64,000 nt of DNA from Macrostomum lignano (lineage: Eukaryota), in NCBI GenBank assembly GCA_002269645.1, contig NIVC01002192.1:1-64000 (forward strand), in the 5' to 3' direction. The translations under genes and the position numbers were made by a program. The notes below the pieces were generated by a model. That model did no database searches. It was given only the letters and a program-made list of their open reading frames with translations, and was not told where the DNA came from. Positions 5,023 through 64,000 of this stretch are shown piece by piece; positions within the stretch are counted from its first letter, which is position 1, and every line of letters starts with the position of its first letter.

Positions 5023-5449
5023 GTGCGTCTTTGAGTTCAGCAAAATGGCCTTTGATTTGAAGCAGTTCACAAGCCCCCAGCGACTAAGTGCGAGCCCTGA
5101 TAACCATCTAAACTGACACGTACAGCTTTCGTGCTGGTCCTTGCACGGTTTACCCCAGTGTTGAATCTGGGAAAGTGAAGCAGAAGGAAGCCACACGCTG
5201 CAGAATTCAAACACTGATACGGGAAGCTTTCAGTTTATTAGCACTAAACTGGCAATATCCCACCTTCTGGACTTCCGAGTTGCAAAGGATTTTGTTTACC
5301 TGCATAATTAAAAAAATATTGCACGCCAGGAAAGCATAAAATACGGTTGCGTTCTTACTGTTTTCTTTTGAGATTAAATGGGATTTAACCATAGACAGTT
5401 GGGTCATTTGAAACTTCACATTAGCAACCTGGCCCGCTCAGGGTCTGTG

Positions 5450-5996: not shown

Positions 5997-6761
5997 TCAG
6001 AGGCCCAGCAGGCGCGGAACGTCAGCCAGGGAGCTCACAATGTGCGTGGCGCCGGCCTCTCGAAGCAGCTCGGCGTTGCCGACCCCGCTGAGGACGCCGA
6101 CGCAGGCGGCAAGTCCGGCGTTGCGGCCAAGTCGCATGTCGGTGCCGGTGTCTCCCACCATGACGGCGCGGGCGGGCGCGGTGCCGAGCCGGGAGCAGAC
6201 GGAAAGCGCCGCGCTGGCGTGCGGCTTCGGCTGGACGTCCGGGTCGTCACCGCAGGCCGCCGCACCCACGAGGGGCTGCAGGCCGCCGCGGTCGAGCGCC
6301 GCTTCCGTCTCGGCCCGGTCGTCCGAAGTGCAAAGGCCGATGAGGAGCCCCGCAGCGGTCAGTCGCTCGAACGTCTCTCTGGTGCCATCAATGAAGCGAA
6401 GGCGACCGCGGTCGAGCTCGCAGCCGAAGGTGACGCGGCGCACGGTGGCCTCGGCGAGCTCGGCGCTGACACCGCTCTCAACGGCCAGCTGCACGAGCGC
6501 ATCAGCAATGTCCTTCTTGGTGCCCTCTGCTAGCAGACCGGGGCCCGTGCGCCGGGTCTCGGGGTCCACACCGAGGCGCCGCAGGATGGGCAGTTGAAGG
6601 TCCTGACGGTCTAGAAGCCGGGTGATCTCGCTGGCCACCTCCTCGGCCCAGGGCGACCACATGGCATGGAAACAGACCACCGTGCCGTCCTTGTCAAACA
6701 GCACGCAGTTGATGTCGCTGAGAGGCTGCTCCAGCTCCAGCTGCGGGGACTCCACGGGCAT
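5997..6761 (-). CDS. HAD-superfamily hydrolase (phosphoglycolate phosphatase-like, class IA), intronless
   Basis: Motif I VLFDKDGT, motif II CTSD, motif III KP and motif IV MVGDTGTD are all present. First ATG at 6761 (MPVESPQ), preceded by an acceptor-like cctcag. Stop at 5997. Confidence 0.88.
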   Translation of the reverse strand: MPVESPQLELEQPLSDINCVLFDKDGTVVCFHAMWSPWAEEVASEITRLLDRQDLQLPILRRLGVDPETRRTGPGLLAEGTKKDIADALVQLAVESGVSAELAEATVRRVTFGCELDRGRLRFIDGTRETFERLTAAGLLIGLCTSDDRAETEAALDRGGLQPLVGAAACGDDPDVQPKPHASAALSVCSRLGTAPARAVMVGDTGTDMRLGRNAGLAACVGVLSGVGNAELLREAGATHIVSSLADVPRLLGL

Positions 6762-7375
6762 TTTTCTGAGGCTTATCAGGCGCACACTTTGAGAGGCCGA
6801 GACGGGAAGCTCAGCGCAGGCTGGGCGCTTCGTTTAAAGTTGCGGAGCTCCGCTGTCCAGCTAGGATTCTTGGTCACGTGATCCGAATGGAAGCCGAGAA
6901 ATCTGCAGCAAGTTGCTCAGGAGAACTTTTCCTTCCTCTCTGCACTCTGTCCCCTGAGTACACTGGTGCACTCTGAATCGGTCGGGCAGGCAGAGATGGA
7001 GAAAGCGCTGAGCTGCTCCTGTGCGGGAGGATCTGGATTGAACTGGCTGGGGAGGCTGTGATGAAGGATGAAGGCTGGGCTTTCAAGTGCTCTGCTTGCC
7101 TGCCTAAGAAGTGACAAGATGCACTTAGGAGTGGAAAAATGCTTTGAGTTCGTCAGCTTTCTCAAGTATTTCTCCCCCGCGCACAGTCTACTGCGGAAGA
7201 AGTGCTGCAAATGTATTTGAAAATCTCTGGAATCAACCTACTGATTTTTATATATTTAAATTTGTTTAAATTCACTAAATTTTACTATGGAAAACTATTT
7301 TTCATCGCGTTGATGCTCGAATTGTGACAGTAACCAATGAAAATAATTTAATGATATGTGAAGCAGTTGTAGAGT

Positions 7376-27465: not shown

Positions 27466-27730
27466 TAACCCTAACCCTAACCCTAACCATAACCCTAAAT
27501 TTAATATTTTGTTCATGATTTTTTGCATGACGCTTCCATTATTTTTTGCATGACGCTTGCATGATTTTTCACATGACGCTTCCATTATTTTTGCATGACG
27601 CTTCTATGATAAACATTTTTAATAAGCTACATGAGCTAATAAGCTACCCTAACCCAAATCTTAACGCTATAACCCTAAACCTAACGCTAAACCTAAACCC
27701 TAACACCAACTCTAACACTAACCCTACAGC
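27466..27730. repeat. Short interstitial (TAACCC)n telomere-like tracts with local degenerate duplications
   Basis: taaccctaaccctaaccctaaccataaccc at 27466-27498 and degenerate copies at about 27646-27727. A ttttgcatgacgctt motif is repeated between them. Confidence 0.7.
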
Positions 27731-29275
27731 CTGACATCTACATAAGTTTGTGAAGCGCTAGTAGTATTTTTTAGCTTAGTATCTTAGCGTTGGGGAGCCA
27801 AAAATGCAGTACAAGTTTTGTAATAAACTAGTAGTTTTAAAAGTAAAAAGTAAAATAAAAGTAGATTTTAAGTACGAAAGTCCTTATTGTGTAAGGTAAT
27901 TATAATATTTTGTTTATACACACTAGAAAGATTGTACATTTTTAACTTATACAGTTTCTTCGAAACGCATAATTGAGCAGCAATTAAAATAATTAGTCAA
28001 CTACCCGACGAGGAATAATTGGCTAGCTAGTTACTCATGAGTCATATCCAACTAAAACTGGCCATTTTAACTGGAAAAGCTAGATAGGCAACTCACTTCA
28101 TCCAGTTGATACTACCTATTCTTTCTTCATTTAACTCGTATTGAAGGACTTATTTATCTAGCTCCAGTTTCTAAACTGAATAGAAACCTGGCAGATAAAT
28201 TACTTCTTGTTATACATAAAAATGATTTTCGGATGAAATTTTATTGATGCATTACTAAACTATTTTACCCTCATACTCTACAATTGCTCAGATTTGTTGA
28301 GTAGGTATAACATATTTTATAACAACTTGCTTAACTTTTGCACTCCATGTCTTTTTATTGCACTTTCATTTATTTTGTTAGCTTAATATTTTTTGCTTTG
28401 CAATCTTATAATGTACCTTTATTGTTAAATTTTGCTATAATGCTTAAACCTTCATATAATATAAGACCAAATTTCATTATATAGCCATAGGCAATAGTTA
28501 GATAGAGTTTAATATTTTAATATTGTTATTTTTTCTAGAATTTATGTTAGCATTAGTATAGGATAGGCCCTAGGATTTTTCATAGTTACCAAATATGTAG
28601 CATATGTATCATTATAATACTATTGATTTCAAAATATATATAGTTACATTTATATTTTATCCAGTAATTTACTTTATGATCTCTTATGTAGAAAATATAC
28701 TTAGCAACATAGAAAAGTTGCCATCATAGAAGATTTTATCTGTGGTTGCAACTTAGCAACACCATATTATGAATATGGTAGACTTGAGTTAAGAGATAAA
28801 GTGGAGTGGTGTGCAAGGGTTAGATGGATTAAAGCTACCCCAATCAGTTTTCTTGTATCTTTTTTAGAATAGTCTAAGAGAAATTGTTTATTTGTACATA
28901 GTGTGGCAAATTTTCGATGTTGCTAAGTATACTTTTATATCAAAAAGGAAATGCTTGTAGAAAAGTTTTGGATTATTTAAAGCCTGCTTGTTATTATTTT
29001 ATTGCATAAAAATATCATATTTAATTATTTAGGCCTAGAAAGTGTATATAATAAAAATTATTATAATCATTTAATATTTGATAGTATAGTGGTCAATAGT
29101 ATGTAGCTTTTTATTTTAGAATATTTTATAATAATAATAGTTTTTAACCTAGCCATCAATCACATTTTAATCTGTCATGGATTTGACATTTTCTAGCTTT
29201 TATTTTATTTTGAATTACTTTTATGAAATAAATCTTAACATCCTCAATATCCCTCAGACAGCAGCATCCCAAGAG

Positions 29276-37321
<8,046 letters not shown>

Positions 37322-37323
<2 letters not shown>

Positions 37324-38782
37324 CTGTTGTGACTGGGTCATGGCCCTCCCACACTGTTGTGACTGGGTCATGGCCTCCCACACTGTTTTGACTGGGTCAT
37401 GGCCCTCCCACACTGTTGTGACTGGGTCATGGCCTCCCACACTGTTTTGAATGGGTCATGGCCCTCCCACACTGTTGTGACTGGGTCATGGCCCTCCCAC
37501 ACTGTTGTGACTGGGTCATGGCCTCCCACACTGTTTTGAATGGGTCATGGCCCTCCCACACTGTTGTGACTGGGTCATGGCCCTCCCACACTGTTTTGAC
37601 TGGGTCATGGCCTCCCACACTGTTGTGACTGGGTCATGGCCCTCCCACACTGTTGTGACTGGGTCATGGCCTCCCACACTGTTGTGACTGGGTCATGGCC
37701 CTCCCACACTGTTGTGACTGGGTCATGGCCCTCCCACACTGTTGTGACTGGGTCATGGCCTCCCACACTGTTTTGAATGGGTCATGGCCCTCCCACACTG
37801 TTGTGACTGGGTCATGGCCCTCCCACACTGTTGTGACTGGGTCATGGCCTCCCACACTGTTTTGAATGGGTCATGGCCCTCCCACACTGTTGTGACTGGG
37901 TCATGGCCCTCCCACACTGTTTTGACTGGGTCATGGCCTCCCACACTGTTGTGACTGGGTCATGGCCCTCCCACACTGTTGTGACTGGGTCATGGCCCTC
38001 CCACACTGTTGTGACTGGGTCATGGCCTCCCACACTGTTGTGACTGGGTCATGGCCTCCCACACTGTTGTGACTGGGTCATGGCCTCCCACACTGTTTTG
38101 ACTGGGTCATGGCCTCCCACAATGTTTTGAGCGGTTCATGGCCTCCCACACTGTTGTGACTGGGTCATGGCCTCCCACACTGTTTTGACTGGGTCATGGC
38201 CCTCCCACACTGTTGTGACTGGGTCATGGCCCTCCCACACTGTTGTGACTGGGTCATGGCCTCCCACACTGTTTTGACTGGGTCATGGCCTCCCACACTG
38301 TTTTGAGTGGGTCATGGCCTCCCACACTGTTGTGACTGGGTCATGGCCTCCCACACTGTTTTGACTGGGTCATGGCCTCCCACAATGTTTTGAGCGGTTC
38401 ATGGCCTCCCACACTGTTGTGACGGGGTCATGGCCTCCCACACTGTTTTGACTGGGTCATGGCCCTCCCACACTGTTGTGACTGGGTCATGGCCCTCCCA
38501 CACTGTTGTGACTGGGTCATGGCCTCCCACACTGTTTTGACTGGGTCATGGCCTCCCACACTGTTTTGAGTGGGTCATGGCCTCCCACACTGTTGTGACG
38601 GGGTCATGGCCTCCCACACTGTTGTGACGGGGTCATGGCCTCCCACACTGTTTTGACTGGGTCATGGCCCTCCCACACTGTTGTGACTGGGTCATGGCCT
38701 CCCACACTGTTTTGACTGGGTCATGGCCCTCCCATACTGTTTTGACTGGGTCATGGCCTCCCACACTGTTTTGACTGTGTCA
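37322..38782. repeat. 29/30-bp minisatellite beginning at the ATP2C1 stop codon
   Basis: Unit ctgttgtgactgggtcatggc(c)ctcccaca, with local 89-bp (30+30+29) periodicity. Confidence 0.95.
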
Positions 38783-39584
38783 TGGAGATATTTTGGCGAG
38801 TTCGTGGCCTTAGTTGGCCCCTTGGTTCGGGCCATGACCCAGTTTTTGCTATATTAAATATTATTAAATGTGCTGTTTTCAAAATATTTTAATTCTCCAT
38901 AATTTCACTCAGCCCCTGCCCTGCTATGCAGCCAGGAATTGCATCGATTTTCGCACGTTTTTTTCGAATCAAAATTTTCAGTACATCTGCACTTTTATTC
39001 CACAGCCAGTCTTCCATGTTTATTGCCTGTCCTGCATAATAAAACTGCTGCTGCTTTTACAGCAAATATTTACAGCTATTTACAGCTGTCCTGCATGCCT
39101 GTCTATTTATACCATTGTTGCTATGCTCAACTCTTTGTCTCGGTGGCTGCTTTCTGCTTGCCAATAAATAACACGCTGAGTAGTTCTTTGAGTCGGGTCC
39201 GGGACAGCTCTGTCAGGTCGGAGCAATCGATCGACCGTGTACTTTATAGATGTAGTGCGCCCAGGCTCCGGCCGTGCTAGTCACCTGTACTTTTATTTTT
39301 CTACACAGGGCATGATGCATTTTTTATATTCAATTGTTTATTAATGATTATGGAAAGTTCTCACTGTACTTTGTTGGTGTCTGTGCATGCCGGGCTGCGC
39401 GCCGTGTTTGGCCGCAAAATTTCTGCTATTCTCATAATATACAGTGGATATTGAGCATGCTTTGATGCTGCACTGGGACTTCATCTGATTTCAAGTTGTT
39501 TGAGTCATTTCTCATGGGGTTTGAGACCACGGGCTCTTAGCGATTGTTCATTTACTTTCTGGGGGAATAGTATAGTGAGCTTCT

Positions 39585-44432: not shown

Positions 44433-46118
44433 ATGGCCGCTGCGGAGCAAATGCGAACTGCGCTGGAGGCCGACGACTGCGAGCAGCTGCTAAAGCTGTG
44501 TCGGCAGCTGGACTCCAACCTGACAGTTTCGGCCGGCTACTTTGAAGGTCCGCCTCACGTGAGAGAAATTTCGGCGGCTCACCACGTCGCTAGCAAGCCG
44601 TACGGACTCGACTGTCTGGAGGTGCTGATCGACCGGTTCGGAGCTGCATGTTTGACATGCAGAGACGAGTTCAACTACACACCTGTGCACTTGGCCGCCA
44701 TTAAGCAGAGCCAGGACAGTCTGAAGCTCATTCACACGACTCTTGGCAGCGACTGTTTTTATGAAAAAGGAAGATTTGGTCGCTCAGTGATTCACTGCGC
44801 TGCCATGAATAAGCATAGCAACAAGGCACTCAAGTGGCTGATCGGTGAGTTCGGGTCAGACAATCTAATGGCGAAGGATGACAATGGTTCGACAGTCGTT
44901 CATCTATCAGCTGAGTTTCAGAGCTCAGATTCGATGGAATTCATTAAATCAATGCTCGGTTCCGACTGCTTCCGTCAGAACGGGTGGCTTGGTCGCACCG
45001 CAGTTCACTGTGCTGCTTGTAACAAGGTCTCAAACTCGTCGCTCAAGTGGCTGATCGATGAGCTCGGCTCAGACTCTCTCATGGCTGCCCAGTTTCAGAG
45101 TTCAGATTCAATGGAATTCATTAAATCGAAGCTCGGTTCCGACTGCTTCCGGCAGCACGGACCCAAAGGACGCACCGCAGTTCACTGTGCTGCTTGTAAC
45201 AAGGTTTCAAACTCGTCGCTCAAATATCTAGTCGATGAGATCGGTTCAGACTCTCTCATGGAGAAGGATGACAATGGATCGACAGTCGTTCATCTGGCCG
45301 CTGTGTTTCAGAGCTCAGATTCGATGCAGTTTATAAAATTAAAGATCGGTTCCGACTGCTTCCGTCAGCACGGACGGCTTGGACGCACTGCAGTTCACTA
45401 TGCTGCTTATAACGAGGTCTCAGACTCGTCGCTCAAGTGGTTGATCGGTGAGCTCGGCTCAGACTCTCTCGTGGAGAAAGATTACATCGGATTGATGGCT
45501 TGTCACCTTGTCGCAGCTCATCAGGGTGAAAACTCCATGGACTTGATGAAGAGCCTGCTCGGAGTTAAAAGGTTCCCTTTGCGTCATCGTTTTGGCCAAA
45601 CTGCAGCTCATTTTGCTGCACTAAATACAAGGAGCAATGCAACACTGGCCTGGTGTGTCAGAGAACTGGGCTCCCAGTGCCTGACTCACGTAGATAAAGA
45701 CGGCAACAATCCACTACACAATGCTGCTCAGCATCAAGATGAGAAGTCGATGCAGCTGGCGGTGAGCTCACTCGGACCGGACTGTCTCAAGCTGCCAGGT
45801 GAGAAGCAGCGAACTGCAGTTCACTTCGCGGCCATCAACACCAACAGCGTCTCTGCGCTAAGGTGGATTGTCGGTCAGCTGGGACCCGACTGTCTGAAGC
45901 TGAGGGACGACGAGGGCATCACGGCTGCGCACCTGGCAGCTCAGCACCAAAGCGAGGACTCGCTGCGGCTCATCAGGGACTCGCTGGGCGTCGCCGCTTT
46001 CGACTTGCAGGACCAGCAGGGACAGTCGGTGGCGGACTATACGAAGAAGAACAACCGGTCGGAGCGGATGCTGGGCTGCATCGCCGAGCTGCGGGAGGAG
46101 GAGAGGCTAAATAGGTGA
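44433..46118 (+). CDS. Ankyrin-repeat exon of ANK-kinase paralogue A (561 aa if the intron is retained; if spliced, stops 15 codons into exon 2)
   Basis: ATG 44433 (MAAAEQMRTAL) follows an atttcag acceptor. Many TPVHLAA/TAVHCAA-type ankyrin repeats. The ORF is open, with only in-frame indels relative to paralogue B. Donor AG|GTGAGC at 46114/46115 overlaps the TGA. Confidence 0.85.
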   Translation: MAAAEQMRTALEADDCEQLLKLCRQLDSNLTVSAGYFEGPPHVREISAAHHVASKPYGLDCLEVLIDRFGAACLTCRDEFNYTPVHLAAIKQSQDSLKLIHTTLGSDCFYEKGRFGRSVIHCAAMNKHSNKALKWLIGEFGSDNLMAKDDNGSTVVHLSAEFQSSDSMEFIKSMLGSDCFRQNGWLGRTAVHCAACNKVSNSSLKWLIDELGSDSLMAAQFQSSDSMEFIKSKLGSDCFRQHGPKGRTAVHCAACNKVSNSSLKYLVDEIGSDSLMEKDDNGSTVVHLAAVFQSSDSMQFIKLKIGSDCFRQHGRLGRTAVHYAAYNEVSDSSLKWLIGELGSDSLVEKDYIGLMACHLVAAHQGENSMDLMKSLLGVKRFPLRHRFGQTAAHFAALNTRSNATLAWCVRELGSQCLTHVDKDGNNPLHNAAQHQDEKSMQLAVSSLGPDCLKLPGEKQRTAVHFAAINTNSVSALRWIVGQLGPDCLKLRDDEGITAAHLAAQHQSEDSLRLIRDSLGVAAFDLQDQQGQSVADYTKKNNRSERMLGCIAELREEERLNR

Positions 46119-46944
46119 GCTGCCTGCTGCTTAAAAAACCCCATTGCGTTGAGGCCATTTAGTATATTTGGATATTACGTACTGTATAATACACAGCAGA
46201 GCAAACCTTAGTCAAGCTTATTTTAACTTGTATAGCGAGTCCCGTTATCGATTGCTTTTTCGTTAGCGGGATTATCGTTCCCGTTTACCTGCCGTTAGCC
46301 CGAACAACAACGACAACAACAACAAAGAAAACAATGTCAACAAAGCAATAATAACAGTAACAACAAAAACAACAGAAAAGCACTGACAGACGCAATGCAT
46401 ATGCCAAAGTTTTTACATAAAATTTGCTTCATACAAAGTCAAATTAATGATGGACACTTCAGGTTCTTGATTTATTAAGCTATGGTAAAAATTACGAAGG
46501 TCAAATTCCTACTTCTATTCGATTCGATTTAACCTCGGGAAGAAGCAGAAACAGGATGAAGTCTGGCTTCGTTGGTTTTGCTCAAATCAATCGAGTCTTC
46601 TCAATTTTCAGGACGTGGCAAACAAGTTGACATTCGCAGTGGTTTTCAGACTGTAGTTTAACTTTGACAATGAGCATCAATATTCATTTGTATGTCAGCT
46701 TTCTGGTTTGGTTTAGGATTTGACTTACTCAATATACCTGTGAATGATAATTCGTTTTCAACGTATGCAAAGTGTGATTTTATTTGAAATTATGATTGTA
46801 CATACTTTGTCAACAACAATGATTTTGGAAGTTCCAATACATGTACATTGGGGACCGCGGGTCCACACCTGATACAGCGGTAAGAAAGACCAGCAGTCTC
46901 AAAACTGCATTGCAATCAAAGCAGTCACGTTTTTCTGCTTCCAG

Positions 46945-47840
46945 AGCTCCGGCTTCCTTGGACCCGAGCTTCAGCAGTTGGACCTTCTAGCCTGACGATC
47001 GGAGAGGGCGGGTTCGGCAAGGTGTATAAGGCCTTCACCGATAGGCAGCAGACAGTCGCTGTCAAAATCGTCGAGCCCGTTCGCTGCAGCGATCCGTCGA
47101 AGCTGGAAACGGCGGTGGAGAATGAGAGGCGGGCTTCGAGATCCTCGTGCGCATCCGGCACCGGAACATCGTGCAGTTTTTCAAGACCGAGCGCTCAGCG
47201 GAGCACGGGTTCTGCATCTTCACGGAGCTCATCGCAGGGTGCAGCCTCCTCGATCTGATGAACCGGCTGAACAAGCCGTTCGATGAGCCAGCAGTGAGGC
47301 GTTTCCCGCATCAAGTGAGCTGTCACTCCTGCTTCTGCCACAGTGTGAATACTGAGCGAACAGCTGACTCTTCGACCCCCGAAACCCCTTTGCAGATCTG
47401 CAGGGCGCTCAACTTCCTGCACTGTGAGCACATCGTCCACCGGGACATCAAGTGCTCCAATATCATGCTCACCCACGAGAGCGTCATCAAGCTGATCGAC
47501 TTCGGACTTGCAAAGGAAATCGTCTCAGCAGCACAGGGAGCCGCGACCTACACCCTCGGAACTGTTCACTTCATGGCCGCAGAGCTGCTTCTTGGTGACG
47601 AGAATGACCGGCTGGTGTACACTCCGAAGACAGACGTGTGGGCGTTCGGCTGCACCGTGTTCGAGATGCTGGAGAGGAGGCCACCAAAAGGTCAGAGTGA
47701 CTTCAAAGGGCATGCCGCAGCTGCCAGACGGGACCTCCGACACTCTGAGAGATTTCTACCGGCGCTGCGTGATGAAGGAGCCTGGAGAGCGGGCGGATAC
47801 TGCGGAGCTGCTGCGACACAGCTTCCTGCAGAGCGGGTAA
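46945..47840 (+). pseudogene. Disrupted Ser/Thr kinase exons of paralogue A
   Basis: Exons 46945-47314 and 47396-47840 align to the paralogue B kinase. They carry TTG>TAG (46988-46990), a 20-nt deletion at about 46997, a 1-nt deletion at about 47131 and a net 26-nt deletion at about 47686. Confidence 0.88.
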
Positions 47841-51577: not shown

Positions 51578-54569
51578 CGATTTCATGGAAACTGGACATT
51601 GTCCAACGGAACTGAGACTGCGTTGTTTTAGGAGTGGAATGCTGTGGCAGTTTTTTGGGAAATTTTCAAGTGTTTACTTTTTTATTGGCGACCGTTTCCG
51701 CTACAAGCCGAACACTATCAAGTCCAGGTGAAACTTTCACGGTGGAGTGACTTTGGGACCTGCTTTTATGCCTAATACGCTTGACTCTGCAGTGGGCGAG
51801 ACCAGCAAAGTAGCAATACTCTTTGCCTTAAATTAATCTCGTGTTGTATTCTTGCACTTTTGTTGCAGTGCAAGGGCATCCCATTCTTTAGTCGTTGTGG
51901 TGACTCAGTTAGTCCGCCTTGCTTCATGCGTTATGCACTAGACTGTGATTTTTTGTTTGGTTTAAGCCTTAGCCTCCCCCCCGCAGTTCTCCTTGTTGTC
52001 ACTATTCTCGTGCCTTGCGTGTACTTTTTGTTGTTTACTGCATTCTGATTGGCTGGGCCGGCAGCGGGCTGGTGTTTAATTTTTTGCAGGGGGTGGTGGG
52101 CTGGAGGGCTTGCGGACCCCCTTCCTCGGGCCGTGGCGCGGGGTGTCGTTTTCGTTGTCTTGGGATTCGGAGCTAGACTAGAGGGGTACATTGGCACGGC
52201 ACTGGCTTCATTGTATGCCAGCCTGCACCACCGCAGACATCACGGGTCTGTGCATCAACACTTGTATGTAGCCTGTGGGCTTTGGGATCCAGGGATACAC
52301 TACTCTCTTGATATCTCAAATACTTTAGCTTGCTAGTACGAGCGAGTTCGGATGAGGGGGGGGTTTAAAGTTGCATTTGTTACTTCGTCAATAATCCTAT
52401 TAAATCTATATTATCCCAAAAAATCGCCATAAAGGGGTCGACTTAGTTCGAAAATGTTTGAACATAATACTTTTACCTGCTGCTTGCTTAATCCTGAGTC
52501 AATCACTTTCAGTGCAAAAAATTTCGCTGCCTCCATAATCCCAATGACTCATCTCTAAAACTTCTCAACTTACAAAATGCAACCCACTGCTACAATTCTC
52601 GCCTCAGCCGGACAAGGGTGAAGGTCAAATTCTTTAGTCAACTGGCCTCGGGTACACAAGACTCTACTGAGCTGATGAGAGAGAAAAGACATGTTTATGT
52701 GCTCACACCTACTTTCTCGTGCTCAAGATCCAAGTCTCCCGATGCTGCCTGCCTGCCTGAGTACACCGCGTTTACTCCTCCCGTCCCATCCTCGACTCGT
52801 CTTGCCATGGAAAGAGTGATTAAAACTAGATAAAAGGACACCCGCTACTTCCAATATGTTCAGAGTTCCCGAGCTCGCCAGTTTGATCCACTGCACTAAA
52901 ATTAATAACTTCAATGGCTGATGCTGAGCTGTCTTATTTTCAGCAGGAGTCTGGTGAATTAGACTACATCAAAAAATGGATTTAACAGTCCAGAATTTGT
53001 TTCGTAGAAAGTGACCGGAATGCCAACCGAGCCAAAAGATGATGAGAGACGAACAAGCGGTAAAAAAATCGGCCAACAGCTTCGCGATTGGACCGATCGA
53101 GCTGACCAGCATCGAAGAGTTGAAAGCCGTCGGTTATCGGATCTAAGGCTTCATCAAGGAATCTGAACGCTATCAAGGAGATTATTCACGACAGCCAGAG
53201 CCAAGGTTTGTCACTGTGTATAAGCGCGAGAGGAATTCTCCAGTGCATGAAGATGGTGCTAAAAATACCAATATCGAATCTTTTTAAAGCAGGTTGGCTT
53301 TACACCGGCTTGGGTTAATTTCCTAGTCCGGGTCTCCAGTTCTCCAGCGCAGCCGAATTTCCCTTTTTACATCTAGGAGCAATGAATAGGCATCTGACAA
53401 AGGCTGCTGATTGCTGCTGATGGAGAATGAGGAGCTGGCTGAGGCCGATTTCCGATCCTTGGCTTCTATTGAACGCTTAGGGTGTTTTTTGATTGCTTGA
53501 ACTCGGGAGCAAATTTTATGGCGAACCAGATGCTGCAGTATCCGTTTTTATACGTTGAAGTAGGGGTCGCAAATTTTTAGGGGGGAGCAAGCTATACCAA
53601 GCTATTCAACCCAATATTAGAAACCTCTACATGCATTGTTACAGGACAAAGAGTATGGCTCATTTTTTACCACGGCAACAAGAAGTTTCTGCTGGCGGAG
53701 CCGCCATTGAAACCGCGATTGGCATCTCGTGACCAGGCCTGGATCCCGGCTTCCATAGCGAGAACACCAGCCAGGGAGCAGTGAGTGATCCGCCTTGCAG
53801 CTCAGACCGAGGAGCTCAGAATTCAGGGACTCCCAGGCACAGGTGCTCGGGATTTCGGATTCCCGGAAAGGCCCAGAAAATGACTGACTTTGACTCTGAT
53901 CCAACTCTGCCGGACCCGATCACCGGACCTGATCTTCGAGCAGCATAACTGATACATGAGTCCGGTCCATCAGCAGCAGTTAGATTGACTCAATCTAGAT
54001 TGACCCATCTGTGCAGCAGCCAGTGCTCAAGTTCGCCTCTCTGCAAGCATCTTCATCGCCAGCCTCCGGCTCTGTGAGCCCCACCCTCCCAGCCAATTGA
54101 GCAGCTCTAATAGCTCTATAGCGCCGAAATTCTGTGCTCAAACCTGCTCGCCTCATCATCAAGGCTCTCCGTCCCTCTGCAATCGTCCCTCTCAAAATGC
54201 AAAACGAGCGGCATTTTGGGCCAAGTTTTGCACCTGCTCGACACCCCTGAGTACTTTATTGTTTGCTGCCGTGGCCCTGCGGCTCCACCAATGCAGAGCT
54301 CGAAGGCCCGCAGCCGCCTCTCCGCCTTCGGCCCCATCTCAGCCTCCAGCCTCCGACTCACCCATTGTGCTGCAGCTTCTCTCTGTCCCCATGCCTGCCC
54401 CGAGTTCAGAAGCCTCTCAGCTGAGTACGCGCTTGCGGGGCAACGGCTGTGTGCAGAAGCTCTAAGAATCGATGAGGCGGTTTAAGGAGCAGCCCAGCAA
54501 CCGCTCGGCCTGAGACCGGCCACACTGCTCAGCTGGAGGCGCTGCCAATTTTGCTACTCGAATTCGGCT

Positions 54570-55885
54570 GTGTTGCCTGTGCTGAAGGTGAGTCTCTGTG
54601 GTTTCTGTGTGCTGCCTGTGCTGAAGGTGAGTCTGTGTGGTTTCTGTGTGCTGCCTGTGCTGAAGGTGAGTCTGTGTGGTTTCTGTGTGCTTCCTGTGCT
54701 GAAGGTGAGTCTCTGCGATTTCTGTATGCTGCCTGTGCTGAAGGTGATGCTGCCTGTGCTGAAGGTGAGTCTGTGTGGTTTCTGTGTGCTGCCACTGATC
54801 CACTGTGCTGAAGGTGAGTCTCTGTGGTTTCTGTGTGCTGCCTGTGCTGAAGGTGAGTCTGTGTGGTTTCTGTGTGCTGCCTGTGCTGAAGGTGAGTCTG
54901 TGTGGTTTCTGTGTGCTGCCTGTGCTGAAGGTGAGTCTCTGCGGTTTCTGTGTGCTTCCTGTGCTGAAGGTGAGTCTCTGCGGTTTCTGTGTGCTGCCTG
55001 TGCTGAAGGTGAGTCTCTGCGGTTTCTGTGTGCTGCCTGTGCTGAAGGTGAGTCTCTGCGGTTTCTGTGTGCTGTCTGTGCTGAAGGTGAGTCTCTGCGG
55101 TTTCTGTGTGCTGCCTGTGCTGAAGGTGAGTCTCTGCGGTTTCTGTGTGCTGTCTGTGCTGAAGGTGAGTCTCTGCGGTTTCTGTGTGCTGTCTGTGCTG
55201 AAGGTGAGTCTGTGTGGTTTCTGTGTGCTGCCTGTGCTGAAGGTGAGTCTCTGCGGTTTCTGTGTGCTGCCTGTGCTGAAGGTAAGTCTCTGCGGTTTCT
55301 GTGTGCTGCCTGTGCTGAAGGTAAGTCTCTGCGGTTTCTGTGTGCTGTCTGTGCTGAAGGTGAGTCTCTGCGGTTTCTGTGTGCTGTCTGTGCTGAAGGT
55401 GAGTCTCTGCGGTTTCTGTGTGCTGTCTGTGCTGAAGGTGAGTCTGTGTGGTTTCTGTGTGCTGTCTGTGCTGAAGGTGAGTCTCTGCGGTTTCTGTGTG
55501 CTGCCTGAGCTGAAGGTGAGTCTGTGTGGTTTCTGTGTGCTGTCTGTGCTGAAGGTGAGTCTCTGCGGTTTCTGTGTGCTGCCTGAGCTGAAGGTGAGTC
55601 TGTGTGGTTTCTGTGTGCTGCCTGTGCTGAAGGTGAGTCTCTGCGGTTTCTGTGTGCTGCCTGAGCTGAAGGTGAGTCTGTGTGGTTTCTGTGTGCTGCC
55701 TGAGCTGAAGGTGAGTCTGTGTGGTTTCTGTGTGCTGCCTGTGCTGAAGGTGATGCTGCCTGTGCTGAAGGTGAGTCTCTGCGGTTTCTGTGTGCTGCCT
55801 GTGCTGAAGGTGAGTCTGTGTGGTTTCTGTGTGCTGCCTGAGCTGAAGGTGAGTCTGTGTGGTTTCTGTGTGCTGCCTGTGCCTG
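54570..55885. repeat. 39-bp minisatellite (about 33 copies)
   Basis: Unit ctgtgctgaaggtgagtctctgcggtttctgtgtgctgc. Each unit contains AAG|GTGAGT on the + strand. Confidence 0.95.
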
Positions 55886-56255
55886 TGCATTGCGAGACAA
55901 CTGTCGTTGGCAGATGACTATTTGCATAAAATGCAACGTCTTAAAAAATTTAAGACTGATTGTAGACGAAAAAGCTGTGAAAATTAGAGAAAATCGACTA
56001 AATCTCAGTAAATCTTGGTAAATTTCAGAACCCTAATAGTAGGTTTTTGCCAAGACGGAACAAGTAATAGTCGAATTTGTCCTTTTGCTTTCATATAAAG
56101 GGGCCTATCTTGAGTACGAGCTAAATATGATCTGTAGCTTAAATTGCTGTCATTTCAGCTGAGCTCTGGGTACTGACTGACTGATATTGCTGGCCCCCAA
56201 TGCAGGTGCGCGCACTGTTCTCCCCTCTCCGTCCAGCTGTCTGATTCCTCATGTA

Positions 56256-56267
56256 GGTCACGTGACC
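56256..56267. promoter_or_regulatory. Palindromic E-box/CLEAR-like motif GGTCACGTGACC
   Basis: 12-bp perfect palindrome about 1 kb upstream of ANK-kinase paralogue B. A similar ggtcacgtga lies upstream of the HAD gene (about 6872-6881). Confidence 0.35.
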
Positions 56268-56982
56268 CAATTTTTTTATCCAATGTGCCCCCTGCTCATG
56301 TCTTCAATATAAAAGATCTGCGCAATATGAACCAGGAACCAGTTTGAATTTCCTTGATTGATCTGCTGTTGTCTTCTGCAGGCACGGGTGCCCGATTCTC
56401 GTCCGAGAATTCGGCTCAGTTCGTTCCCGTAAGTTCATGCTGCTTGAGCACAGCATTTGGTTCCGCTGTCCCCGCTGTCCGCTGTCCTAGGGATCCGGGG
56501 ATCAACCAGAAACTGCAGAGACATATGGGCGATTTTCTTTGGGTGCCAGAAACTGGGTGTGGCCTGGATGACTTGCCGGTCGAGTCGATCAGAAACTTCG
56601 GGACATCTCATCCAGGTCTCTTTGCTGCTCCTGAGGATAAAGGGAGAAATTTTAATTTCACGAGAACTCACGAGAGCTCCGGAATGCCTGTACCGGTTAA
56701 TCTGGCTGCTGTCGCACTGGAGGCGGACAAGCCGACAAGTCACCGATTTCATTCGGTTCGGTCAGCGTCCCGCATCTTGAGCTCCATCTCGGTTGCTTAA
56801 GCTCTCAGCTGCTTTATTGTTTCTAATTTGTTGGTTTGCCTCCAGCTTCAGCTTTAAATTCCATTAAATCTACAGTATTAAGCTCCACAGCAGTGCCAGC
56901 TTCTCATATCAGCAGCACCTTCACAAAGCAGTGCCTCCGCTCCCTCCGCTCCGGTCTCTGCTGCCCCGCCACATCTCTGCAG

Positions 56983-57045
56983 TGGTCAAAGCGGTTAACA
57001 CGCGCCTGACTCTCGTGGCGAAGTACCCGGGTTCGATTCCGTGTT
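56983..57045 (+). mobile_element. tRNA-derived SINE-like head (Pol III A and B boxes)
   Basis: A-box-like tggtcaaagcgg (56983-56994) and B-box ggttcgattcc (57030-57040) at tRNA-like spacing. No clean acceptor stem. The homologous site in copy A (about 44000-44045) is decayed. Confidence 0.5.
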
Positions 57046-57255
57046 TAGCCGCACTAATTCGGTAGTCTGGAGATTTGTGAGTTTGTGCCTGCGTGCGAGC
57101 CACCCTGATACATTCCGAAATTTTGCAGATTACATTGTCAATCTCATGGCAATCAAGGGACATTCGATGCAAAGCCCCTCAAATCTCAAATCTCAAACAC
57201 AAACACGGACGAATTGCAGGTCGTGTTCAACTCGACTGACGCTCAATTCTTTCCG

Positions 57256-60200
57256 ATGGCCGCTGCGGATCAACTGCGAGCTGCGCTGGAGGCCAACGAC
57301 TGCGAGCAGCTGCTGAAGCTGTGCCGGCAGCTGGACTCCAACCTGAAAGTGTCGTCTGGCAAATTTAAAAACCCGCCTCACACGAGAGAAATGTCGGTGA
57401 CTCACCACGTCGCTAGCAAGCCGTACGGACTCGACTGTCTGGAGGTGCTGATCGACCGGTTCGGAGCTGCATGTTTGACATGCAGAGACGAGTTCAACTA
57501 CACACCTGTGCACTGGGCCGCCATGGAGCAGAGCCAGGAGACCCTGCAGCTCATCCACGTAAACCTGAGCAGCGACTGTTTTTATGAAAAAGGAAGATTT
57601 GGTCGCTCAGTGTTTCACTGTGCTGCCGTGAATGAGCATAGCAACAAAGCTCTTGAGTGGCTGATCGGTGAGCTCGGCTCAGACTCTCTCATGGAGAAGG
57701 ATGACAATGGCTCGACAGTCGTTCATCTGGCCGCCGAGTTTCAGAGCTCAGATTCGATGGACTTCATTAAATCGAAGCTCGGTTCCGACTGCTTCCGTCA
57801 ACGCGGGTGGCTTGGTCGCACCGCAGTTCACTGTGCTGCTTTTAACACTGTCTCAAACTCGTCGCTCAAGTGGCTGATCAATGAGCTCGGCTCAGACTCT
57901 CTCATGGAGAAGGATGACAATGGATCGACAGTCGTTCATCTGGCCGCCCAGTTTCAGAGCTCAGATTCGATGGAATTCATTAAATCGAAGCTCGGTTCCG
58001 ACTGCTTCCGTCAGTGCGGGTGGCAAGGTCGCACCGCAGTTCACTGGGCTGCTTGTAACAAGGTCTCAGACTCGTCGCTCAAGTGGCTGATCAATGAGCT
58101 CGGCTCAGACTCTCTCATGGAGAAGGATGACAATGGATCGACAGTCGTTCATCTGGCCGCCGTGTTTCAGAGCTCAGATTCGATGGAATTCATTAAATCG
58201 AAGCTCGGTTCCGACTGCTTCCGTCAGCGCGGGTGGCTTGGTCGCACCGCAGTTCACTGTGCTGCTTTTAACACTGTCTCAAACTCGTCGCTCAAGTGGC
58301 TGATCGATGAGCTCGGCTCAGACTCTCTCATGGAGAAGGATGACAATGGCTCGACAGTCGTTCATCTGGCCGCCCAGTTTCAGAGCTCAGATTCGATGGA
58401 CTTCATTAAATCGAAGCTCGGTTCCGACTGCTTCCGTCAGAAGGGGTGGCAAGGTCGCACCGCAGTTCACTGGGCTGCTTGTAACAAGGTCTCAAACTCG
58501 TCGCTCAAGTGGCTGATCGATGAGCTCGGCTCAGACTCTCTCATGGAGAAGGATGACAATGGCTCGACAGTCGTTCATCTGGCCGCCCAGTTTCAGAGCT
58601 CAGATTCGATGGACTTCATTAAATCGAAGCTCGGTTCCGACTGCTTCCGTCAGAAGGGGTGGCTTGGTCGCACCGCAGTTCACTGGGCTGCTTGTAACAA
58701 GGTCTCAAACTCGTCGCTCAAGTGGCTGATCAATGAGCTCGGTTTGGAGGCTCTCATGAAGAAGGATGACATCAGATTGACGGTCTGTCACTTGGTGGCA
58801 GTTTACCAGGGTGAATACTCAATGGACTTGATGAAGGGCCTGCTCGGAATCGAAATTTTCCATTTGCGCGATCGCTTTGACCAAACTGCAGCTCATTTTG
58901 CTGCACAAAATACAGGCAGCAATGCGACACTGGCCTGGTGTGTCAGAGAACTGAGCTCTCAGTGCCTGACTCAAGTAGACAGAGATGGTGACACTCCAGT
59001 TCACTGTGCCGCTCAGCATCAAGATGAGAAGTCGATGCAGCTGGTGGTGAGCTCACTCGGACCGGACTGTCTCAAGCTGCCAGGTGACAAGCAGCGAACA
59101 GCAGTTCACTTCGCGGCCATCAACACCAACAGCGTCTCTGCGCTAAGGTGGATTGTCGGTCAGCTGGGAGCCGACTGTCTGAAGCTGAGGGACGACGAGG
59201 GCGTCACGAGTGCGCACCTGGCAGCTCAGCACCAAGGCGAGGACTCGCTGCGGCTCATCAGGGACTCGCTGGGCGTCGCCGCCTTCGACTTGCAGGATCG
59301 GCAGGGACAGTCGGTGGCGGACTACGCGAAGAAGAACAGCCGGTCGGAGCGTATGCTGGGCTGCATCGCCGAGCTGCGGGAGGAGGAGAGGCTACGAGAG
59401 GCGATGGAGGACAGCCTTCTGCAGCGGAGTTCTCCCGAGGGACAACAGGATGAGTGAGCTGCCTGCTGCATAAAGGCACAATTGGTGTTGCGTTTAGGGC
59501 TCTAGCTGGTATAGCGGCGGACTCGTTGATAATGTGCTCGTCCATAGTCCATAGTGCAGAGCAGACTGAAAGCCTTAGGCCATTGATTAACTGGCTTGCC
59601 AATTAACTGAGGCAAGCGTAATTGAAGTTGTACAGCAATAACAGTTTCCGTTGAGCATCCCTAGGTACGAACAGCAACAAAAGCAAAAACGAAAATATCA
59701 ACATCAACAATAATAGAAAAATTAACAACAAAACGAGCGACTACGACAATAATTATAACAATAACGAAAAAAGCACAACAGAAAAAGCAGAAACAACAAC
59801 ACTGACAAAACGCAGTGCATTTACCAAAGTTTTAAATTTAAACTTGCTTCATACAAAATTAAATCACTGATAGGGCAAGTTAAGTTCTAGCTTTATCAAG
59901 GTATGATGAATTTTATATTGGTTAAATTCCTAATTCTATTCGATTCGATTCGACCACTGGAGGGGGAGTAAAACGTTTCGTTGGTTTTGCTTAAATCACT
60001 AGGATCTAATCAATTTTCAGGACGAAGCAAACAGGTTGACATTGACGGTGGTTTTCACAGTTTTGTTCAAATTTGGCAATGAGAGCATCAGCATCAATAT
60101 TCATTTCTGAGTCAGCCTTATGTTAGATTTTACTCAATACACTTGTGAATGATAATTCGTTTTCGACCTATGCGTACATCGATTTCATTTACCAGTATAA

Positions 60201-61353
60201 ATATTATTATCTACAAATTTTAATCTTTAAATAAATTTGTGAAACCCAACAAGACTTACTTTATTAACAATTGACCATTTTGCAAATCAAAAAGCTTGTA
60301 GTGCGATCCCAACGCTTGAGGACCGCCAGTCTATCATGATGCAGCGGCGATAGAAACCAGAAAGTCCCAAAACTGCATCGCAATCAAAGCAGTCTCGCTT
60401 TTCTGCTTCCAGAGCTCCGGCTTCCTTGGACCCGAGCTTCAGCAGCTGGACCTTCTTGCCCGACGCCGCAGGCTACAGGCAGCTTATCGGAGAGGGCGGG
60501 TTCGGCAAGGTGTACAAGGCCTTCACCGATAGGCAGCAGACGGTTGCTGTCAAAATCGTCGAGCCCATTCGCTGCAGCGATCCATCGAAGCTGGAAACGG
60601 CAGTGGAGCAGGAGAGGCGGGGCTTCGAGATCCTCGTGCGCATCCGGCACCGGAACATCGTGCAGTTTCTCAAGACCGAGCGCTCAGCGGAGCACGGGTT
60701 CTGCATCTTCACGGAGCTCATCGCAGGGTGCAGCCTCCTCGATCTGATGAACCGGCTGAACAAGCCGTTCGATGAGCCAGCAGTGAGGCGTTTCTCGCAT
60801 CAAGTGAGCTGTCACTCCTGCCTCTGCCACAGTGTGAATACTGAGCGAACAGCTGAATCTTCGACCCCGAACCCCTTTGCAGATCTGCAGGGCGCTCAAC
60901 TTCCTGCACTGTGAGCACATCGTCCACCGGGACATCAAGTGCTCCAATATCATGCTCACCCACGAGGGCGTCATCAAGCTGATCGACTTCGGACTCGCAA
61001 AGGAAATCGTCTCAGCAGCGCAGGGAGCCGCGACCTACACCCTCGGAACTGTTCACTTCATGGCCGCAGAGCTGCTTCTTGATGACGAGAATGACCGGCT
61101 GGTGTACACTCCGAAGACAGACGTGTGGGCGTTCGGCTGCACCGTGTTCGAGATGCTGGAGAGTAGGCCACCGAACAGTGACGTCAATCCAATGCGGATT
61201 CCTCACAGAGTGACTTCAAGAGACATGCCGCAGCTGCCAGACAGGACCTCCGACACTCTGAGAGATTTCTACCGGCTCTGTGTGATGAAGGAGCCTGGAG
61301 AGCGGGCGGATACTGCGGAGCTGCTGCGACACAGCTTCCTGCAGAGCTGGTAA
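57256..61353 (+). CDS. Ankyrin-repeat + STE/MAP3K-like Ser/Thr protein kinase, paralogue B (intact, 3 exons, about 1019 aa)
   Basis: Exons 57256-59453 (donor GA|GTGAGC, phase 2), 60413-60803 (acceptor ttccag|A, phase 2 in, phase 0 out) and 60883-61353. The kinase motifs GEGGFG, VAVK, HRDIKCSN, DFG, GTVHFMAAE and DVWAFG are intact. Exon 1 contains five 213-nt double-ankyrin units. Confidence 0.9.
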
Positions 61354-61479
61354 GCGTGCGGACTCCAGCTTTGCACTGCGCAGTTTGAATCACAGAATAT
61401 TTGTGAATTTTCACTATTCCACTGTTGCACTGTTCTATTGTTCTGCTGTTTTTTTAGTTTTATTGATCTGCTTTTTTAC

Positions 61480-62200
61480 TGTTTTGCTGTTCTACTGTTC
61501 ACCTGTTTCACTGTACTACTGTTCCACTGTTTTGCTTTTCCACTGATTTGCTGTTCCACTGTTTTGCTGTTCCACTGTTTTGCTGTTCCACTGTTTTGCT
61601 TTTCCACTGATTTGCTGTTCCACTGTTTTGCTGTTCCACTGTTTTGCTTTTCCACTGTTTTGCTGTTCCACTGTTTTGCTGTTCCACTGTTTTGCTTTTC
61701 CACTGATTTGCTGTTCCACTGTTTTGTTGTTCCACTGTTTTGCTTTTCCACTGATTTGCTGTTCCACTGTTTTGTTGTTCCACTGTTTTGCTGTTCCACT
61801 GTTTTGCTGTTCCACTGTTTTGCTGTTCCACTGTTTTGCTGTTCCACTGTTTTGCTGTTCCACTGTTTTGCTGTTCCACTGTTTTGCTGTTCCACTGTTT
61901 TGCTGTTCCACTGTTTTGCTGTTCCACTGTTTTGCTGTTCCACTGTTTTGGTTTTCCACTGATTTGCTGTTCCACTGTTTTGTTGTTCCACTGATTTGCT
62001 GTTTCACTGTTTTGTTGTTCCACTGATTTGCTGTTCCACTGTTTTGCTGTTCCACTGTTTTGCTGTTCCACTGTTTTGCTGTTCCACTGTTTTGCTGTTC
62101 CACTGTTTTGCTGTTCCACTGTTTTGCTGTTCCACTGATTTGCTGTTCCACTGTTTTACTGTTCTACTGTTCAACTGCTCTACTGTTCTACTGTTCACCT
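61480..62200. repeat. 16-bp minisatellite in the 3' flank of paralogue B
   Basis: Unit ctgttccactgttttg; absent as an array from the homologous position in copy A. Confidence 0.95.
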
Positions 62201-62556
62201 GTTTTACCGATTTACTGTACTACTGTTCACTGTTTTGCTATTCTGTTTTAGTTTTCTGTTTCACTGTTTTAGATTTGTTTAACTGTCCCAGCCTATTCAC
62301 GGACTGACTGTCAGATTTTTATTCCTGCTCACCTTGCTGCTCCACTATGCTGGGACAAGAGTTCATCCCACTGGATCTGTGCGCGCATCCGTGAGCTGTA
62401 ACTCCTGCCCTGCGCCAAAGTTAAAATATCGTTTATGAAAATTTGTCTACAGTATTTATTGATTTAATTGCATCATCCTTCTTTTCTTTGTAAACCTTTA
62501 TTTATTAGCTAATCTGACTAAAACACCTTTTAACGACAGCGCATCGCTCTGTCCTA

Positions 62557-64000
62557 CTGTTGTATTGTTGAGCTATATGCTGATGTATTGTTCAACTGTA
62601 TGCTGTTGTATTGTTCAACTGTATGCTGATGTATTGTTCAACTGTATGCTGTTGTATTGTTCAAATGTATGCTGATGTATTGTTCAAATGTATGCTGTTG
62701 TATTGTTCAAATGTATGCTGATGTATTGTTCAACTGTATGCTGATGTATTGTTCAACTGTATGCTGTTGTATTGTTCAACTGTATGCTGTTGTATTGTTG
62801 AGCTATATGCTGATGTATTGTTCAAATGTATGCTGTTGTATTGTTCAACTGTATGCTGTTGTATTGTTCAACTGTATGCTGTTGTATTGTTCAACTGTAT
62901 GCTGTTGTATTGTTGAGCTATATGCTGATGTATTGTTCAAATGTATGCTGTTGTATTGTTCAACTGTATGCTGTTGTATTGTTCAACTGTATGCTGATGT
63001 ATTGTTCAACTGTATGCTGTTGTATTGTTCAACTGTATGCTGTTGTATTGTTGAGCTATATGCTGATGTATTGTTCAAATGTATGCTGTTGTATTGTTCA
63101 ACTGTATGCTGTTGTACTGTTCAACTGTATGCTGTTGCATTGTTGAGCTATATGCTGATGTATTGTTCAAATGTATGCTGTTGTATTGTTCAACTGTATG
63201 CTGTTGTATTGTTGAGCTATATGCTGATGTATTGTTCAACTGTATGCTGTTGTATTGTTCAACTGTATGCTGTTGTACTGTTCAACTGTATGCTGATGTA
63301 TTGTTCAAATGTATGCTGATGTATTGTTCAACTGTATGCTGTTGTATTGTTCAACTGTATGCTGTTGTATTGTTCAACTGTATGCTGATGTATTGTTCAA
63401 CTGTATGCTGTTGTATTGTTCAACTGTATGCTGTTGTATTGTTCAACTGTATGCTGTTGTATTGTTGAGCTATATGCTGATGTATTGTTCAAATGTATGC
63501 TGTTGTATTGTTCAACTGTATGCTGTTGTATTGTTCAACTGTATGCTGTTGTATTGTTCAACTGTATGCTGATGTATTGTTCAAATGTATGCTGATGTAT
63601 TGTTCAACTGTATGCTGTTGTATTGTTCAACTGTATGCTGTTGTATTGTTGAGCTATATGCTGATGTATTGTTCAAATGTATGCTGTTGTATTGTTCAAC
63701 TGTATGCTGATGTATTGTTCAAATGTATGCTGTTGTATTGTTCAACTGTATGCTGTTGTATTGTTCAACTGTATGCTGATGTATTGTTCAAATGTATGCT
63801 GATGTATTGTTCAACTGTATGCTGTTGTATTGTTCAACTGTATGCTGTTGTATTGTTGAGCTATATGCTGTTGTATTGTTCAACTGTATGCTGTTGTATT
63901 GTTCAACTGTATGCTGTTGTATTGTTGAGCTATATGCTGATGTATTGTTCAAATGTATGCTGTTGTATTGTTCAACTGTATGCTGTTGTATTGTTCAACT
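62557..64000. repeat. 23-bp minisatellite running off the window end
   Basis: Unit ctgttgtattgttcaactgtatg. Confidence 0.95.

Follow-up and report, generated by a model that had tools for sequence, protein, structure and literature searches.

Homogenised ankyrin units with changing groove residues in a kinase gene of Macrostomum lignano and in its kinase- and caspase-fused paralogues

The window analysed here comprises 64,000 nucleotides of contig NIVC01002192.1 (assembly GCA_002269645.1) of the flatworm Macrostomum lignano, and window coordinates are contig coordinates (window 55901-62000 is 100% identical to the record). Near its end lies gene B (57256-61353, plus strand), a gene of three exons encoding about 20 ankyrin repeats followed by a STE20-like kinase, and upstream of it lies a tandem paralogue, gene A. 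Exon 1 of gene B (57256-59453, +) encodes an N-terminal helical cap and the ankyrin repeats, identified by open reading frame (ORF), Pfam, AlphaFold2 and Foldseek. The array sits in the ORF 57214-59457 (+), with a start codon conserved in the family at 57256; the frame of exon 1 runs to a TGA at 59455-59457, and the donor GA/GT at 59453/59454 joins it to the kinase exons. Intron 1 (59454-60412, +) is of the GT...AG type and its junction (QQDE/APASLDPSF) is matched in the annotated proteins P0002 and P0064. Exon 2 (60413-60803, +) contains the kinase N-lobe with GEGGFGKV and VAVK, as identified by Pfam (Pkinase) and by tblastn of P0002, and exon 3 (60883-61353, +) contains the C-lobe with HRDIKCSN and DFG (Pkinase E=3.3e-35), ending in a TAA at 61351-61353. 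The spliced product has 1019 amino acids plus the stop and matches the last 1019 residues of UniRef A0A1I8H2C8 (P0064) without a difference; that protein comes from a separate annotation source.

The ankyrin domain of gene B was identified in the Pfam scan as Ank_2 (E=2.7e-56) and Ank (E=4.5e-36). AlphaFold2, run with a family alignment of 23 sequences, gave a predicted local distance difference test score (pLDDT) of 91.4 and a predicted template modelling score (pTM) of 0.74; the predicted fold is a continuous all-helical solenoid of paired helices with a period of 35/36 residues. Foldseek matches to this model were NOMPC, ankyrin-B (AnkB), ankyrin-1, TRPA1, espin and designed ankyrin repeat proteins (DARPins), with probability 1.00 for NOMPC, AnkB, ankyrin-1 and the DARPins and a TM-score of 0.71 for espin. 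By profile, register and modelled solenoid fold, the product of gene B is an ankyrin repeat protein. The nearest solved structures to its kinase are SLK, STK10, MST3/4 and MAP4K4 (E about 1e-39 to 1e-32, the best 1.6e-39), and by this similarity the domain belongs to the STE20-like group, with its catalytic motifs kept. No NACHT or NB-ARC domain was found when genes A and B were scanned with Pfam, or in the Pfam lists of the relatives P0001-P0034.

The homogenised part of the solenoid comprises five units of 213 nt, B1 to B5 (57658-58722, +), starting at 57658, 57871, 58084, 58297 and 58510. Tandem Repeats Finder (TRF) placed the array at 57656-58771, with a period of 213, 5.2 copies and 94% matches. 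Each unit has 71 codons and forms two ankyrin repeats, repeat a of 35 residues and repeat b of 36; codon numbers begin with the W of WLI, and the start of codon c in unit k (0-4) is at 57658 + 213k + 3(c-1). The units are 87-99% identical over 355 residues (1-9 of 71 residues differ between any two), with a mean proportion of differing synonymous sites (pS) of 0.038 and of differing non-synonymous sites (pN) of 0.047. Nine codons vary in their amino acid (4, 27, 35, 49, 52, 59, 62, 64 and 67) and two only synonymously (18 and 48). An earlier note made from the DNA letters had described five near-identical units in gene B, and these are real by TRF, codon table and pS. The motifs that it had singled out, RQ[R/C/K]G-W-[L/Q]G, H[C/W]AA[F/C]N[T/K] and AA[E/Q/V]F, are exactly the variable sites of B, and the extra states quoted with them (N/H, P/R, K, Y and E) are those of gene A. 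A0A1I8H2C8 also contains all five units, with their variants and their order unchanged. Three more 71-codon units with the same period, B6-B8 (58723-59361, +), are diverged and unhomogenised.

Within the array, 6 nucleotides differ between B1 and B3, 7 between B2 and B4 and 2 between B4 and B5, and 14 differ both between B1 and B2 and between B3 and B4. These distances are in line with the signatures that units 1 and 3, and units 2 and 4, had been said to share. The first-half sites at nt 10, 54 and 105, however, pair B2 with B3 and all four site combinations are present, so that the array is a recombinant mosaic and the clean 426-nt higher-order duplication proposed for it does not hold. Unit 5, to which a recombinant look had been attributed, matches B4 throughout except at codon 52, where it carries CTT, the state of B1 and B3.

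The ankyrin register G4-x5-T6-[PVA]7-[VL]8-H9-x10-A11-A12-x13-x14 was set by alignment to solved ankyrin proteins, and in those to NOMPC and espin the canonical motif lines up with G-[SR]-T-[VA]-V-H-x-A-A. The variable codons of B then correspond to ankyrin positions a13 (codon 27), b33/0 (49), b3 (52), b10 (59), b13 (62) and b15 (64), to which gene A adds a variable b2 (codon 51). These six codons of B are assigned to the groove side, and codons 4, 35 and 67 to the outer helix. In the AlphaFold model, where the residue number for B1 is 134 plus the unit codon, codon 27 falls in the final turn of the first helix of repeat a (155-162), and codons 49-52 fall in the loop 182-189 ahead of the first helix of repeat b. 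Codon 59 is placed within the latter helix (190-195), codon 62 where it ends and codon 64 in the turn that follows. Positions 2, 3, 5, 13, 14 and 33 are those that Binz and colleagues are said to have randomised in the DARPins in 2003. The randomised DARPin face is concave and is used for binding (PMC3602593). In the ANK-N5C library positions 2, 3, 5, 10 and 13 were randomised and 33 was optimised, and its authors describe them as a continuous binding surface formed by beta-turn 1 and helix 1 (PMC4308713). Register and modelled secondary structure agree, in the main, that the variation falls on hairpin-tip and first-helix positions as in the DARPins.

For the selection tests, 12 codons were pre-set from the DARPin positions in both repeats (14, 16, 17, 19, 27, 28, 49, 51, 52, 54, 62 and 63). 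Non-synonymous change in this set was compared with synonymous change over the whole unit, events being the column minimum and pN/pS the pooled pairwise Nei-Gojobori estimate (NG86). In gene B, with 5 units, 4 of the 12 set codons and 5 of the 59 others are variable (Fisher p=0.039), with a pN(in)/pS of 3.7 and a binomial p of 0.044. The 18 units of P0001 and P0003 have 8 variable codons of 12 in the set and 6 of 59 outside it (p=1e-4), with a pN(in)/pS of 4.2 (binomial p=3e-4) and, in the genomic DNA, a ratio of pN outside the set to pS of 0.27. The 9 units of P0016 and P0017 have 9 of 12 and 15 of 58 (p=0.002), with a pN(in)/pS of 4.05 (binomial p=0.005). The Fisher-combined p over the three subfamilies is 1e-5.

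Eight arrays, kinase- and caspase-fused, were then pooled (45 units). They contain 94 non-synonymous events in the 12 codons and 50 in the other 59, 13 of the latter at b10, along with 32 synonymous events; the omega-like ratio is 4.66 in the set (p=2.7e-16) and 0.54 outside it (p=0.006). Sliding the codon set by 1-6 columns left 6-56 events where the unslid set has 94, and none of 200,000 random sets of 12 columns reached 94. In a protein survey, 112 pairs of near-identical units drawn from 16 proteins gave ten hot columns (16, 17, 19, 27, 28, 51, 52, 54, 59 and 62), of which nine are among the pre-set codons and the tenth, 59, is ankyrin position b10 on the groove side. The evidence for the diversifying selection proposed in the earlier note is thus marginal in gene B alone and strong in the family, and that for DARPin-like variation as a whole is likewise weak in the window alone and strong in the family. 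The non-synonymous excess, on whose significance the note had let its reading hang, is narrowly significant at the pre-set sites of the window.

A homology search identified at least 30 paralogues in M. lignano that share the 70/71-residue unit, their units fused to a kinase of the gene B type, to a caspase or to nothing. The close protein relatives of gene B found in this search are all from M. lignano, and the family is specific to the Macrostomum lineage; gene B is a modest, recently expanded member of it. P0001 is an ankyrin-caspase with the motif QACRG and 11 units, and P0003 an ankyrin-kinase with 7 units. Their units are alike to the same degree as B1-B5 or more, the framework is invariant and changes are confined to a3, a5, a13, a14, b2, b3, b5, b10, b13 and b15. 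In many of the hot codons two or all three bases have changed, and the adjoining four-fold sites are identical. Ankyrin-caspase genes with intact QACRG and H-G motifs were identified in L002 (3-3728), in L006 (9890-12562 and 21014-22562) and in L007 (2947-6691). The caspase domain is nearest to M. lignano caspase-3-like proteins (46-48%) and to caspase-3/7 of other animals; the Schistosoma matches in this similarity search were to the CARD caspase-2.

Exchange between units is visible in this family as well. P0001 contains repeated cassettes, such as units 2/7/10 and units 4/8. L002 and L006, copies of one ankyrin-caspase locus, are 99.2% identical overall, and their aligned array, about 2.4 kb long, shows 8 substitutions between them, 7 of which rewrite three hot codons of one unit (L002 1540-1544 and 1644-1645; L006 10191-10195 and 10295-10296). 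TTC TGT is changed to TGG AAG (FC to WK), the codons found in most sister units, and AGG to GTG (R to V). The comparison is based on the single best BLAST alignment; a MAFFT global alignment slid by whole units and gave spurious mismatches. The pattern looks like short templated exchange acting on specificity residues. The shuffling of units proposed earlier is supported by the four-gamete mosaic in B, the cassettes of P0001 and the L002/L006 pair. Copy number differs between paralogues, which have from 3 to 11 or more units.

A copy-number allele was considered in the one-unit protein P0002 (PAA60108.1) and rejected. Its locus is the window DNA itself (100% identity), where P0064 has five units; the single unit of P0002 is chimeric, beginning as B1 and finishing as B5, and 284 residues (four units) are omitted. 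The model was built on the window DNA and therefore represents a collapse of the array. The P0017 model is collapsed in the same way, reading GDRTAF where the genomic ORF of L005 (9932-11782) holds one more unit. Public gene models of the family are collapsed across arrays and need curation with long reads.

The ankyrin ORF of gene A (44433-46118, +; Pfam Ank_2 E=4e-40) is still open and has 84% amino acid identity to B. Its units occupy 44835-45437 (+): A1 at 44835-45047, A2 at 45048-45224 and A3 at 45225-45437. A2 has only 177 nt, an in-frame deletion of 36 nt taking out EKDDNGSTVVHL. The earlier note had counted the three units as near-identical to each other, and this is refuted by that loss, by 26-32 differences in 213 nt and by a pS of 0.25-0.39 (mean 0.33); between A units and B units the mean pS is 0.21. 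The kinase exons of A (46910-47840, +) are pseudogenised relative to B, as identified by pairwise DNA alignment and by frame switches in tblastn. Their lesions comprise an in-frame TAG at about 46988-46990, a 20-nt deletion at about 46997/46998 just before GxGxxG, a 1-nt deletion at about 47131 and a 26-nt deletion at about 47693. Gene A is a decaying duplicate of gene B. Outside the arrays the two genes have a pS of 0.15-0.165 and a dN/dS of 0.5-0.6, and B6-B8 are orthologous to A4-A6 (pS 0.165, dN/dS 0.51). Since the units of B have a pS of 0.038 against 0.15-0.165 in the flanking sequence of A and B, the B array was homogenised or re-expanded after the A/B duplication. The use of the A units as extra homogenised copies was dropped, as they are diverged and the copy is decaying; the selection signal vanished when they were added to those of B, and gene A was treated separately in the selection counts. 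A third paralogue, with ankyrin repeats only, was identified downstream of A and B just past the end of the window (L001 21387-22685; record 65887-67185). It has the same orientation as they do, which makes the locus a tandem cluster with three or more members of the family.

The remainder of the window is rich in minisatellites, which occupy about 32% of the 64 kb (sum of merged TRF intervals) with periods of 8-273 bp. Examples are found at 675-1525, 3944-5026, 17694-18681, 37323-38785, 54569-55882, 61413-62286 and 62557-64000, and two of these arrays flank gene B on either side. This points to a genome that readily forms tandem arrays, coding ones among them. Degenerate short (TAACCC)n telomere-like repeats lie at 27466-27498 and 27646-27726, internal to the contig and far from both window ends. 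The exons of a P-type cation ATPase (29177-36285, +; Cation_ATPase_N, E1-E2_ATPase and Cation_ATPase_C) are split by long minisatellites at 29859-31028 and 31952-33198, and upstream of it are a HAD-like hydrolase ORF (5997-6785, minus strand) and a sugar-transporter ORF (7376-8527, minus strand). The ORF at 494-1675 (minus strand), without a Pfam match, has a putative N-terminal signal peptide recognised by eye, MDIKLCLGVLLLLAAVTGSCQG, followed by about 30 Tyr/Ser-rich decapeptides YSSYYPSYSR. It may encode a secreted structural or adhesive protein or be a minisatellite read in frame.

Several points weigh against the reading of the array as a groove diversified by selection. Over the whole unit, pN/pS in gene B is 1.24 and the excess is not significant (p=0.37), and the window statistics are weak, coming from 5 units with 12 non-synonymous and 2 synonymous events. 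The eight pooled arrays are partly dependent, as P0001, P0003, P0067 and L006 share cassettes by descent, and all sequences come from the assembly of one inbred line, which has gaps and, in at least one repeat array, frame-breaking single-base indels. The path-averaging of NG86 puts some synonymous steps in hot codons, and the ratio of in-set pN to in-set pS is about 1.6. Three of the nine variable codons of B are on or beside the outer helix in the model, 4 and 35 within it and 67 capping it, and they carry similar side chains (G/N/D, D/E and N/D). Finally, the concave-face placement of the others derives from register, model secondary structure and published ankyrin geometry and not from a computed surface.

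The main rival is static specialisation with homogenisation of the framework. Here the groove residues would be old and under purifying selection, for instance as contacts to one conserved elongated partner, gene conversion would only wipe out neutral differences in the framework, and the non-synonymous excess would consist of old differences that had been protected. Codon 27 fits this account, being GAG, CAG and GTG (E/Q/V) in the same order in A1-A3 and in B1-B3 even though the framework of B was homogenised after the split of A and B, and so do the synonymous steps, which are raised in the hot codons (in-set pS of 0.17-0.23 against 0.04-0.06 outside). On the other hand, paralogous arrays hold wholly different residue combinations at the same positions, with cassettes duplicated and re-ordered, and L002 and L006, at 99.2% identity, already differ by three replaced hot codons and one other substitution in 2.4 kb. 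Conversion tracts would, moreover, need to have stopped repeatedly at single codons. We regard static specialisation as unlikely.

Neutral drift is somewhat less likely again. Under this alternative young tandem duplications would arise in a minisatellite-prone genome and would vary at the least constrained ankyrin positions. Arrays form commonly here, tandem repeats making up about 32% of the window; the highest entropy in ankyrin repeats generally is at positions 2, 3, 5, 13 and 14 (PMC4308713); and the whole-unit ratio of gene B is the non-significant one given above. Against this, the non-synonymous rate at the pre-set sites is about 4-4.7 times the synonymous rate in the three subfamilies (p=0.044, 3e-4 and 0.005) and in the pooled arrays (p=3e-16), and many hot codons have changed at two or three bases beside identical four-fold sites. 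Drift cannot surpass the synonymous rate, and pure drift is therefore excluded. An assembly artefact, in which long reads of paralogues or haplotypes were mixed in a repeat-rich and partly polyploid genome to give chimeric units and false variants, is very improbable: a sister array does show frame-breaking single-base indels and an N gap and gene models are visibly collapsed (P0002 lacking four units; P0017 compared with L005), but the variants are substitutions at specific codons that keep the frame, unlike the indels typical of long-read error, and they recur in the separately sourced P0064 (a separate annotation, although the assembly is possibly shared), which makes assembly error an unlikely source.

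The explanation that we consider probable is a family of fused-effector recognition receptors with an ankyrin framework homogenised by recombination and groove residues that change fast. The product of gene B would be a cytosolic protein with a long ankyrin solenoid and a STE20-like kinase at its C-terminus, part of the solenoid being a coding minisatellite of 213 nt whose unit is an ankyrin pair (35 and 36 residues). The data show that recombination between units, by unequal exchange and gene conversion, keeps the framework near-identical and alters the number and order of units. The positions lining the groove, that is the loop before helix 1 (33/0, 2, 3 and 5) and the groove-facing turn of helix 1 (10, 13 and 14), gain amino acid changes above the synonymous rate, and the same process acts in at least eight arrays of the family, fused to a kinase of the gene B type or to a caspase-3-like protease. 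The groove would then be a ligand-binding surface with its specificity diversified by selection, and ligand binding may control the fused effector, leading to phosphorylation signalling or to proteolysis and cell death. In that case the family could be a repertoire of intracellular recognition receptors, similar to the fungal NOD-like receptors (NLRs) without the nucleotide-binding oligomerisation domain (NOD) module. By analogy an immune or non-self role of the family is possible. The fuller proposal, a germline-encoded and NOD-free repertoire in which an ankyrin groove diversified by recombination is coupled to a kinase or a death protease and directed against pathogens or non-self, is put forward tentatively and is in our judgement more doubtful than the explanation as a whole. 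Programmed or somatic diversification, of the kind of the variable lymphocyte receptors (VLRs) or the diversity-generating retroelements (DGRs), was considered, and nothing in the data calls for it, although no test aimed at it was made.

Homogenised arrays in which the contact residues are hypervariable are a hallmark of recognition systems that evolve fast, among them fungal NLRs, PRDM9 and lamprey VLRs. In M. lignano one variable module is joined to either of two effectors, the STE20-like kinase or the caspase, which suggests modular sensors that convert binding directly into signalling or cell death. Little is understood of innate immunity and self/non-self recognition in flatworms. M. lignano is a laboratory model with established RNA interference (RNAi) and transgenesis, and the receptor idea is therefore directly testable in it. 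The natural variant sets also indicate which framework and contact positions are tolerated in a 35/36-residue ankyrin pair and may be of interest to protein engineers.

Among known proteins, ILK, TNNI3K, RIPK4/ANKK1 and DAPK combine ankyrin repeats and a protein kinase in one polypeptide, as gene B does. Their repeats are few, diverged and conserved and their kinases belong to other groups than that of gene B. A 2024 survey described caspases with ankyrin repeats (ANK caspases) as unique to parasitic flatworms and reported from M. lignano no more than a caspase whose prodomain is kinase-like (PMC11463336). The M. lignano proteins P0001, P0012 and P0067 resemble those of the parasites in having ankyrin repeats and then a caspase with QACRG. 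Such ankyrin-caspases of M. lignano are unmentioned in that survey (PMC11463336), and gene B differs from them in carrying a kinase. Literature searches on the family and on the gene identifiers found no paper describing them, and the searches found no animal ankyrin-based homogenised array with hypervariable contact residues.

The DARPin and ANK-N5C libraries share with the flatworm arrays a constant framework, and all ten hot columns of the family fall within the union of both position sets. The flatworm arrays differ from them in being natural and in alternating a and b repeats of 35/36 residues, and Cys, Gly and Pro, which are excluded from the libraries, are found at their hot positions. 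The zinc-finger arrays of PRDM9 and the KRAB proteins (PMC8925151) are likewise animal coding minisatellites with homogenised units and hypervariable, selected contact residues. Zinc fingers, however, bind DNA and are characterised, whereas the flatworm array is an ankyrin one, fused to an enzyme, with a ligand that is presumably a protein. In evolutionary mode the PRDM9 arrays are the nearest animal counterpart.

The closest known system is that of the fungal NLRs with highly conserved repeats. Their ANK, TPR and WD repeats (Podospora HNWD, het-e and het-d, and others) have more than 85% internal identity and undergo concerted evolution, shuffling and unit-number polymorphism, and the repeat sensors are fused to varied effectors, kinases included (PMC4986451, PMC12222747). 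Among metazoan ANK, TPR and WD repeats only 0.8% are highly conserved, and in the fungal ankyrins diversifying selection acts at a few inner-helix and hairpin/loop positions of the concave face (Dyrka et al. 2014, PMC4986451). B1-B5 lie within the threshold that Dyrka et al. 2014 set, an identity of 85% or more across 100 residues or more, whereas the units of gene A, with 26-32 differences in 213 nt, fall short of such internal conservation at the DNA level. The selection at concave-face positions is similar as well, with omega-like ratios of 4.66 and 0.54 inside and outside the set, the flatworm positions being placed by register and model. The flatworm genes differ from the fungal ones in lacking NACHT and NB-ARC, in their animal host and in their C-terminal kinase or caspase, and their unit joins two repeats, one of 35 and one of 36 residues (71 in total), where the fungal unit is a single repeat of 33-34 residues. 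In the fungi repeat number is polymorphic, and in the flatworm differences in unit number are known between paralogues of one inbred line.

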